From Blepharisma stoltei ATCC 30299 (Eukaryota; Protista; Ciliophora): 64,000 bases of DNA. The DNA lies in the NCBI GenBank assembly GCA_965603825.1, contig CBFDEM010000046.1:186001-250000 (forward strand), in the 5' to 3' direction. The position numbers and the translations under genes were made by a program. Position 1 is the first letter of the stretch, and every line of letters begins with the position of its first letter. The notes beneath the pieces were generated by a model, which was not told the origin of the DNA, ran no database searches, and saw only the letters and a list, made by a program, of their open reading frames with translations. This document shows, piece by piece, positions 39,057 through 42,269 of this stretch.

Positions 39057-40065
39057 CTAAAGCCCATCGATTTCAGAGGCTCTAGTAGCTGATGAATCTT
39101 CGAAATAAATAAGCTCCTCTAAATCTGAATCTGAATTTTCGGTTATATCTTCATATAAAACTTCTTCGGTTGAAATCTCTTCTTCGGTTGAAAATTCTCC
39201 AATTGGAATTCTATCACTTGCTCTTTCTTCAAGAGAAGTTTTGCTTTTGTTTTTAATAGTGCTTGATGAATCTATCATCTCTGGCCAGGCGGCAAGTGTC
39301 ATAGCTGCATTCGAGCTTCTCAATTTTTTTGACTTTTTATTATAACTTACCAGTCAAACGTTGAGTTTTAGTTTTCCATGTGCTAATAACAGTTGATAGA
39401 TTTTTTTGCTTTTATCTTCTGTTTCTAGACGAGAATTTTTAAACACTACATCATCAATTTCCCAGCCAGGTTTATGCTTTCGTAAAAATTTTTCGGACCT
39501 ATTTGGAGAAGGCAAAAAAAGGGCAAAGCCAGCAAAATTGGCAAAATTTTGTCTGACACCTTCATAATCCAATATAAAATCATATTAATTTTGGCAAGAG
39601 TTTAGGGTCGTATACCAAATGCATTGGATTTCGATTTATACTAACTTTTTCAATTTTTTCGAAAATTTTGCCTTCTTTGCTTGCTTTGCCATTTTTGCAG
39701 TTTTTTGCCTTCCTAAAAATAGCTCCCAATTTTTCAAGACTAGCAAGTGTTATTGCCGGATTTATATGCTCTTTAAAGGCAGCCCCATAATTAGTTTTAA
39801 TGCTGATTTCAATTCTGCAACGCTTGGGAAATTCTATTAATGCTCAAAGTCTCAGATTATTATTTCCAGATGAAACTTGGTATAGTTGCTTATCTTTTAT
39901 TTTGATTTCTGAGAAATAGTGAGAATCTGCATAAAATCTAATTTCAGGATCCACCAATTTTAGATTTCACGCATATGTGTTTTTTAAGTCAGCTATAGTC
40001 CAGCAGCTTGGGCACTTGAAGAGCTTTTTGATACTTAGTCATTTAATTTCAACAGATATATTCAT
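39057..40065 (-). pseudogene. Paralog of 41565-42269 (putative tandem ubiquitin-like fold), interrupted by a TIR element
   Basis: ATG 40065 (MNISVEIKWLSIKKLFKCP..IKTNYG..LASLEK). Removing 241 nt gives a 768-nt intact ORF continuing FLRKHKPGWEIDDVVFKNS, colinear with the paralog. Confidence 0.8.
39495..39727. mobile_element. MITE-like non-autonomous element, ~56-66-bp imperfect TIRs, 8-bp TSD AATTTTTC
   Basis: AATTTTTC at 39487-39494 and 39728-39735. Left arm GGACCTATTTGGAGAAGGCAAAAAA; right arm (reverse complement) GGGAGCTATTTTTAGGAAGGCAAAAAA. Confidence 0.85.
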
Positions 40066-40262
40066 TTATTACAGCCATTTAATAAATAAATTATTAGACT
40101 CGAAGCAACCAAGCTACTATATTATGATAAGAAAAATGTTTATGTAGTATCGACCCTTTTAAAAATATTAAATTAAATACGCATAAATAAAAGCGAATAA
40201 ATTAATAAAAACATTAAGAATTTAAATTTCAAGCTGATTTAATTATGATTTTAAACTTAAAC

Positions 40263-40640
40263 TTAATTACTTAAGAGGGCACCTTTCCATGCTTTCCACA
40301 CTGGCTCATCTTCTTTATATCCTTTACTCGCCATCACTTCTCTCCATTCACGGACCATCGAGCAGCAGCAAAAAGTGGCCAAAATGCAGTCGTTAAGATA
40401 TGATCCTTTTATGTTGTAGACTTTTCTTAATTTAGTGCGATTATACGCCACACCAAAACAGCATAAGCCACATGCCGTCAAAAATGCTATAAGCGGAGCA
40501 TTTTCTTTTTCATCATTGATCAATTTTGTTATTGTAGCCTGCAAGCACGGAGTTCCACAAGGCACAAGGCACGACCAATAACATGTTAAGGGTGCAGCAT
40601 AACAATCGAACAGCTCATAAGCCCAATCAGGTCCTTCTAT
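40263..40640 (-). CDS. PLAC8/DUF614 Cys-rich protein (start codon ATA or lost)
   Basis: WAYELFDC..CYWSCLVPC, RTKLRKVYNIKGSYLNDC..FCCCSMVRE. No ATG in frame upstream of the domain before a TAA. Confidence 0.75.
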   Translation of the reverse strand: MEGPDWAYELFDCYAAPLTCYWSCLVPCGTPCLQATITKLINDEKENAPLIAFLTACGLCCFGVAYNRTKLRKVYNIKGSYLNDCILATFCCCSMVREWREVMASKGYKEDEPVWKAWKGALLSN

Positions 40641-41564: not shown

Positions 41565-42269
41565 TTACAAGCATAGATAACCAATAAGATCTTCTGGAGC
41601 AGACCCTATATTTTCTAAAACGGCTTCAGTTGGAGCTTCTTCAAAGCTGTTTTTGTAATTAGCATTTTCCCACGATTTGATCACCTCACAGTTGATATCA
41701 AGCTCCATAATTTTTTCTTTGTTGGCCTCACGAGAGGAATGATTTTGGATGTATCTAGGTTCGCTTATCAAGCAAACTTTGAGTTCAAGTTTTCTGTATT
41801 CTAATGCAATATGAATAATCTTTTTACTAATATCTTCGATTCTTCCATTAGAATTTCTAAACTCTATGTCATCGACATCATTCCATTCAGGAAATTTTTT
41901 AAAAATAAGATCACGAAGCTGTAGAAGTTGATGATCAGGATAAACATCAATAGAAAAAGGCAATCCAAAGTTGGTTTTGCACTTAATATTAATTAGGCTG
42001 CGGCTGGAAAAGCGTATTAATACAAACAGTCTCAATACATTTCCCTCATAACGAAACTCAGATAGCTGCATGTTATCATCAGGGATAATGTGTGAGCTGC
42101 CTCTAGAGCTTGGATCATATAAAAATATTATAGTGGGATTGGTGAGTGCCAGTCTTCGTTCGTATCTCTTCTTTAAAGTAGCTATTGTGATCGTATTCGG
42201 GCATATGAACCATTTAGAATGGCCTAGAGAGCTAATTTGGACAAATAATAAACTCATTATTACCATCAT
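41565..42269 (-). CDS. Protein with two putative ubiquitin-like (beta-grasp) domains
   Basis: Patterns TITIATLKKRY and INIKCKTNFGLPFSIDVYPDHQLLQLRDLI resemble Ubl beta1-beta2-alpha1. The fold assignment is inference. Confidence 0.6.
   Translation of the reverse strand: MMVIMSLLFVQISSLGHSKWFICPNTITIATLKKRYERRLALTNPTIIFLYDPSSRGSSHIIPDDNMQLSEFRYEGNVLRLFVLIRFSSRSLINIKCKTNFGLPFSIDVYPDHQLLQLRDLIFKKFPEWNDVDDIEFRNSNGRIEDISKKIIHIALEYRKLELKVCLISEPRYIQNHSSREANKEKIMELDINCEVIKSWENANYKNSFEEAPTEAVLENIGSAPEDLIGYLCL

Follow-up and report, generated by a model that had tools for sequence, protein, structure and literature searches.

The window, the whole 64,000-nt stretch of the Blepharisma stoltei ATCC 30299 assembly that was analysed, carries a gene that is interrupted by a 233-bp insert (Table 1). 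Removal of 241 nt (the insert and one copy of the repeat flanking it) gave an ORF of 255 aa on the minus strand, from 40065 to 39057, in which four TGA codons are read as tryptophan. The UGA=Trp code has been published for the macronuclear genome of this strain (PMC9942806). The repaired ORF could be aligned to the paralog at 41565-42269 without gaps across the site, with a score of 225 compared to 34 +/- 5 for shuffled sequences, which confirmed the frameshift repair and gap-free alignment proposed in the initial annotation. Beyond the insert, no further stop or frameshift was present in the two halves of the gene. With the insert kept, the product is 188 aa long (112 host and 76 element residues) instead of 255 aa, and the retained allele could therefore encode a chimeric protein. 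Under UGA=Trp the element (39499-39729, minus strand) is open for 76 codons in the host frame, probably by chance. A PLAC8-family gene (Pfam, E=7e-10) was located between the two paralogs, at 40263-40565 on the minus strand and upstream.

A search of the genome gave two members for the host family. No Pfam match could be obtained for the family and no database relatives were found for the paralog. The protein database queries were the pieces of the host protein and the intact paralog; the joined form was obtained by local translation. In the Atlas, the model of the paralog is similar to a small protein with a ubiquitin-like domain (TM 0.52/0.69, residues 5-170), and this structural match can be taken as a lead only that the family may be ubiquitin-like.

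Table 1. Coordinates of the interrupted gene, its paralog and the parts of the insert (positions in the window)
Feature	Position	Strand	Basis or remark
Host gene, 3' part; frame intact to stop	39057..39494	-	
Left 8-bp direct repeat AATTTTTC, TSD without TA	39487..39494	+	sequence; single copy at X12 empty site
Non-autonomous TIR element of 233 bp, MITE-like; no coding similarity to somatic MULE/IS1595 genes	39495..39727	.	
Left arm: 10-bp end motif GGACCTATTT and 4 GCAAA subterminal units	39495..39550	+	
Premature TAG, met after 76 element-derived codons; 188-aa product if insert kept	39499..39501	-	
Inner symmetric TA...TA pair (39500/39720), TTT inward of both, 5-6 nt inside ends	39500..39721	.	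computed
Unique interior, ~111 bp; no further somatic-assembly match	39551..39661	.	
Right arm: (G)GGAGCTATTT end motif and 5 GCAAA units	39662..39727	-	
Right 8-bp direct repeat	39728..39735	+	sequence
Host gene, 5' part, codons 1-112; probable tandem ubiquitin-like protein (lead only)	39728..40065	-	
Intact paralog of host gene, 234 aa, ~35-40% identical	41565..42269	-	only other family member found in genome

The insert (39495-39727) is flanked by an exact 8-bp direct repeat, AATTTTTC, at 39487-39494 and 39728-39735, and an exact 8-mer match at fixed ends is expected by chance with a probability of ~3.5e-5. A 9-bp TSD with one mismatch in the right copy fits as well and brings both ends (GGACCTATTT / GGAGCTATTT) into register, while the 8-bp reading leaves one surplus G at the right end of the insert; on a single copy the two readings are indistinguishable. 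The GC content of the insert is 34%. Its arms are imperfect inverted repeats of 56 bp (left) and 65 bp (right). In their alignment 48 positions are identical, 8 are mismatched and 9-10 are gaps, among them a gap that takes up an entire 8-bp unit, and the aligned part is ~86% identical. The local alignment score of 65 was well above that of 1000 shuffles (22.5 +/- 4.3, maximum 44), and folding of the insert as single-stranded DNA gave z = -4.7. Each arm begins with a 10-bp end motif, GGA(C/G)CTATTT, followed by GCAAA units 9-11 bp apart, four on the left (spacings of 11, 9 and 9) and five on the right (9, 9, 9 and 10). In a scan of the whole window for combined TSD and TIR structures, this site ranked top with a score of 36 and all others scored 18 or less, so no other structure of this kind was found in the window. 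The description given in the initial annotation, i.e. identical 8-bp copies around 233 bp with a one-mismatch 9-bp alternative, long inverted arms with four and five GCAAA subrepeats, and the sole such insert among the genes of the window, thus held when checked on the sequence and by script.

At 233 bp, with TIRs and without similarity to transposases, the insert falls within the definition of a MITE as a short (<500 bp), non-coding element with TIRs. A spliceosomal intron was rejected because no frame-restoring GT-AG pair is found near the ends and a contig that is probably RNA enters the insert; introns of Blepharisma are 15-16 nt long. The insert also does not fit the class of palindromic IESs of ~228 bp, as it measures 241 bp by the convention of that class and is not >=90% palindromic. 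The sole match in an Rfam search was a hairpin at E=0.8.

Sequencing runs were evaluated as assembled contigs, in which rare variants are invisible. Run X12 carries the same species label and belongs to the same study as the source of the assembly, is ~93% identical to the window and, as judged from published data lists, probably represents strain HT-IV. In an X12 contig with a depth of 174, position 39486 is followed directly by 39728, so that 241 nt are skipped, and the joint is ambiguous over 8 letters. This is an exact empty site, joined in frame, and provides the reference against which the 8-bp repeat is a TSD. The lack of such a site in any strain or species, together with a lack of further copies, had been named as a ground for refutation, and X12 supplies the site.

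In ATCC 30299 the insert is retained. Run X3 covers the entire region, including the insert, with zero differences, and so does run X5. Since these two independent libraries cross the insert without differences, an assembly chimera, which had been named as a ground for refutation, was rejected. Two X8 contigs (39102-39399 and 39610-40041) are identical to the window and the latter covers 118 nt of the insert; X8 is probably an RNA run, its intergenic bins being empty. The host gene appears to be transcribed with the insert in place. Neither the empty joint (241-nt skip) nor an inner TA-TA joint was present in the contigs of X3, X5 and X8. The proposed check on RNA therefore came out in part, with a probable transcript entering the insert and no empty-site joint in X8 contigs. 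The earlier suggestion of a non-TA IES that is only partly excised found no counterpart, as the same-strain contigs, which drop rare variants, contain no partially excised form.

Run X5 has an extra segment of ~605 nt at 40220-40229 which is missing from X3 and from the assembly. This indicates that X5 is germline-enriched and that normal excision works ~490 bp away from the insert. The ~605-nt segment lies between exact copies of a 10-bp repeat, ATTTAAATTT, with TA in its sequence. A repeat of this length that includes TA, found at an excised IES, could represent a MULE-type TSD on which the excisase is able to act. For IESs and MITIES the somatic retention is <=0.02, whereas the insert at 39495-39727 is present in the somatic assembly, X3, X5 and X8. 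Its repeat AATTTTTC is without TA, while TA-containing terminal direct repeats are found on three quarters of Blepharisma IESs (PMC9942856). In ATCC 30299 the insert is not an IES.

Comparison of the two strains also provided information on the host gene. Strain differences affected 12 codons synonymously and 25 non-synonymously (40 of the 53 listed differences), giving a rough between-strain dN/dS of 0.6 (range 0.26-0.89). Twelve amino-acid differences could be polarised with the paralog, of which the window copy matches the paralog in eight and X12 in four; within host residues 1-150 the split is 4 vs 4. Consequently, there is no surplus of derived changes in the ATCC 30299 copy. Taken together with the dN/dS of ~0.6, this points to a weakly constrained gene in which prolonged decay since the insertion is not apparent.

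Further copies were searched for in the somatic assembly, where all counts are lower bounds. BLAST with the whole element and with its interior returned only the element itself. Five patterns of the TIR and subrepeats gave itself only, matches at chance level (16 vs 10 in the control) or a coding Lys-Gly repeat, and a two-arm profile matched only at E>0.07, in no case with an inverted partner. A coding Lys-Lys-Gly tandem repeat that mimics GGCAAAA units (L010:1500-1580, G000:C33) was set aside as unrelated to the element. No sibling copy was found among the contigs of the germline-enriched X5 and a metagenome pattern scan gave no match. One X12 contig of 142 nt, with a depth of 2.5 (vs 174), matches 39654-39706 of the right arm at ~90%, with three substitutions and two gaps. 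Its interior side is unlike the interior of the insert, the similarity of its flank is marginal (P~0.07) and its junction does not occur in the somatic assembly. As its depth would suit germline DNA, this contig may hint at a germline sibling element in the second strain. The initial annotation had spoken of a MITE family with TA-free ends. The non-autonomous TIR element with a TA-free TSD of 8(-9) bp, of Merlin/MULE type, was borne out, but the term family was not, since the BLAST search for copy number yielded no second somatic copy and the 142-nt contig is the only hint of one.

The autonomous Merlin/MULE partner that had been anticipated was not encountered either: at six MULE and five IS1595 loci of the somatic genome the TIR of the insert is absent, and no TSD and TIR structure occurs within ~5 kb. 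Transposases of both types are encoded by Blepharisma, and the triad is intact in some of them. The MULE and IS1595 (Merlin) transposases of Blepharisma have been described as being without TIRs, with which the somatic loci agree, and a published supplement gives 10 MULE and 5 IS1595 domains as germline-limited. A MULE-domain segment of 2.25 kb is present with 99% identity at two unrelated loci (L041:2717-4970, G000:C48, and L042:3025-5271, G000:C12). It stops inside the transposase region, has internal repeats of ~128 bp and no TIR seen, and represents a somatic MULE fragment that was copied recently. Its ends are unrelated to those of the insert, and it was rejected as autonomous partner for this reason. 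Around the somatic MULE and IS1595 genes, paralogous segments of 71-76% identity were observed (L043:2423-3659 vs L046:1668-2904, and L045/L047/L048), which suggests that these genes spread via segmental duplication and not by transposition.

With a rough probability of 0.65, the locus can be read as a lineage-specific non-autonomous insertion that was left in place by a TA-preferring excisase and cuts the 255-aa product to 188 aa. The element would be a non-autonomous cut-and-paste MITE, most likely a derivative of Mutator/Foldback type and otherwise of Merlin type. A DDE transposase supplied in trans would have made a staggered cut of 8-9 bp and inserted the element, with 8 bp of the target being duplicated. 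Entry into the germline would have taken place in the lineage leading to ATCC 30299 after its split from the second strain, a gain that is the probable direction of change with the second strain known here from a somatic-form contig. In the development of the somatic genome the PiggyBac-type excisase would remove the element to no visible extent, so that it would be carried in essentially all somatic copies and transcribed with the host gene. Its persistence could be explained by the host being a weakly constrained member (dispensable or buffered) of a two-gene family, in a strain that is inbred and long cultured; a small-population argument for retention has been made for Blepharisma (PMC9942856). 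A young insertion is expected to show a perfect 8-bp duplication and host halves without other stops or frameshifts, and both were seen. Branch 3b of the published model predicts that MITEs which cannot be excised remain rare and do not reach fixation (PMC9942856, Fig. 6). Against this reading, the arms (~86% identical, with an 8-bp indel) are more diverged than those of a fresh insertion with perfect TIRs, although Merlin families that are active often have imperfect TIRs (PMC8101967). The lack of a sibling in the somatic assembly and X5 contigs, and of an autonomous partner at the 11 somatic loci, also counts against it.

An unlikely alternative, yet the one to be weighed most carefully, is that the insert is an older, MITE-derived non-TA IES shared by both germlines, which the second strain excises precisely at the 8-bp repeat and for which ATCC 30299 has lost excision, either by cis decay of the ends or through an epigenetically inherited retained state. 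The diverged arms would agree with greater age, 6,566 Blepharisma IESs carry non-TA direct repeats, and ~70% of IESs lie within genes and are removed with precision. The low-depth X12 contig (2.5 vs 174) that matches the right arm may mean that related DNA is germline-limited in that strain, but the contig differs on the interior side (P~0.07) and thus does not represent the orthologous copy. An insert at the orthologous site was not found in X12, which weighs little since germline forms drop from contigs of total DNA, as the neighbouring IES did in X3; nor did an empty form occur among ATCC 30299 contigs. Much less probable is a minority excision in ATCC 30299 that leaves some somatic copies in frame, with the cut made either at the 8-bp repeat or, as a cryptic event, at the inner TA pair (39500/39720). 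Such a cut at the inner pair was computed to remove 220 bp and would restore the frame with seven added residues, and cryptic IESs, of which ~10,000 have been published for Blepharisma, show excision in ~5% of reads (PMC9942856). However, one third of all cuts restore the frame by chance, 14 nearby TA pairs do so, and neither joint appeared in X3, X5 or X8 contigs.

The two remaining explanations are both remote. An ancestral insert could have been lost precisely from the germline of the second strain by MULE-type excision of the element and one TSD copy, for which Muta1 gives a precedent, its excision being ~90% precise when TSDs are present (PMC5225508), and a rough dN/dS of ~0.6 would suit a period as a pseudogene. 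This would need two events instead of one, and among the listed differences neither strain has a stop or frameshift in either gene half. A non-transposon origin, either as an assembly chimera or as an insertion from DNA repair whose inverted appearance is due to chance, was regarded as the least probable of all. The single copy and the AT-rich, low-complexity arms would be compatible with it, but the insert is spanned by two independent libraries without differences, its inverted-repeat score is far above that of the shuffles and an exact 8-bp duplication stands against a real empty site.

For the preferred reading, that of a recent insertion left in the soma, the reason for the escape was proposed in the initial annotation to be the TA-free ends. 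This is plausible and fits branch 3b of the model (PMC9942856, Fig. 6). The missing TA is nevertheless not proven as the cause, since 6,566 IESs whose repeats are of the non-TA type are excised in Blepharisma (PMC9942856) and the insert itself has a TA pair 5-6 nt inward of its ends. It is also conceivable, though highly improbable, that a domesticated MULE (or IS1595) transposase, induced during development, and not PiggyBac, precisely removes a germline MITE via the 8-bp TSD in the second strain. If true, the element would be a strain-polymorphic substrate of a second IES pathway that handles long TA-free direct repeats.

The insert is a real element of a known kind which is polymorphic between strains and kept in the soma, and it is apparently undescribed; no MITE with an 8-9 bp TSD is named in the available portions of the text of the Blepharisma papers. 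A TIR element that differs between strains and has a perfect 8-bp TSD implies recent movement of DNA by a transposase of this kind, unless the insert is an IES shared by both germlines. The locus offers a concrete case of a branch that was predicted and undocumented, in which MITEs that are not cut by the excisase remain rare and do damage to genes (PMC9942856, Fig. 6, 3b). As the two strains can be mated, the locus also lends itself to testing whether the excision of a non-TA insert can be directed by an empty somatic allele. With one locus and a known class of mechanism its importance is modest, and it is a tidy natural example of the predicted escape from genome editing rather than a new mechanism.

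Among the known systems, the non-TA and cryptic IESs of Blepharisma bounded by terminal direct repeats (PMC9942856) resemble the insert in being intragenic, precisely removable at a non-TA direct repeat and of a length in the non-periodic range. True IESs have, in contrast, a somatic retention of <=0.02 (PMC9942856), and the insert was present in the somatic assembly and all same-strain contigs examined. With BogoMITE and other MITIES of the same species (PMC9942856) it shares the nature of a non-coding TIR element inside a gene. BogoMITE has a TAA/TTA TSD, a C-rich TIR of ~30 bp, a length of ~389 bp and ~8,000 copies, and is excised (PMC9942856), while the insert has an 8-bp TA-free TSD, a length of 233 bp and one somatic copy, and is retained. 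Identity with BogoMITE was rejected since both TSD and TIR differ.

As to the superfamily, anatomy makes MULE/Foldback the probable assignment, with a Muta1-type derivative as best fit; Merlin is a possible but less likely candidate on the same grounds, and any other superfamily is unlikely. The Merlin/IS1595 elements (IS1016 group, as defined in PMC8101967) agree with the insert in GG-starting TIRs (here GGAC... and GGGAG...), a TSD of 8-9 bp and a TIR length within 24-462 bp. Their imperfect TIRs are common and their transposases occur in Blepharisma. However, no DDE_Tnp_IS1595 partner with the TIR of the insert was present at the five somatic loci, the modular arms suit MULE/Foldback better, and the described ciliate Merlin genes are without TIRs and TSDs. 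MULEs are characterized by a TSD of 8-9 (to 11) bp and can have a composite TIR, as the insert does with a 10-bp motif and four or five units of 9-11 bp. The Muta1 derivatives of Aedes aegypti (MULE, type-2 Foldback) have an 8-9 bp TSD without sequence preference, a 10-bp terminal motif, subterminal repeats of 9-15 bp and heterogeneous interiors (PMC5225508). They differ from the insert in arm length (~145 bp vs 56/65 bp, with units of ~9-11 bp in the insert) and in copy number (hundreds vs one, with no partner found for the latter). MULE/Foldback was favoured because Muta1 derivatives share with the insert the modular arms, in which the terminal 10-bp motif is followed by short subterminal tandem repeats of variable number per arm, as well as the TSD of 8-9 bp and the unique interior. 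The likeness is one of anatomy alone, with no sequence similarity being claimed, and on this basis the Muta1 derivatives, together with the MITE-like Tm1 elements (PMC3169594), were listed as the closest known systems.
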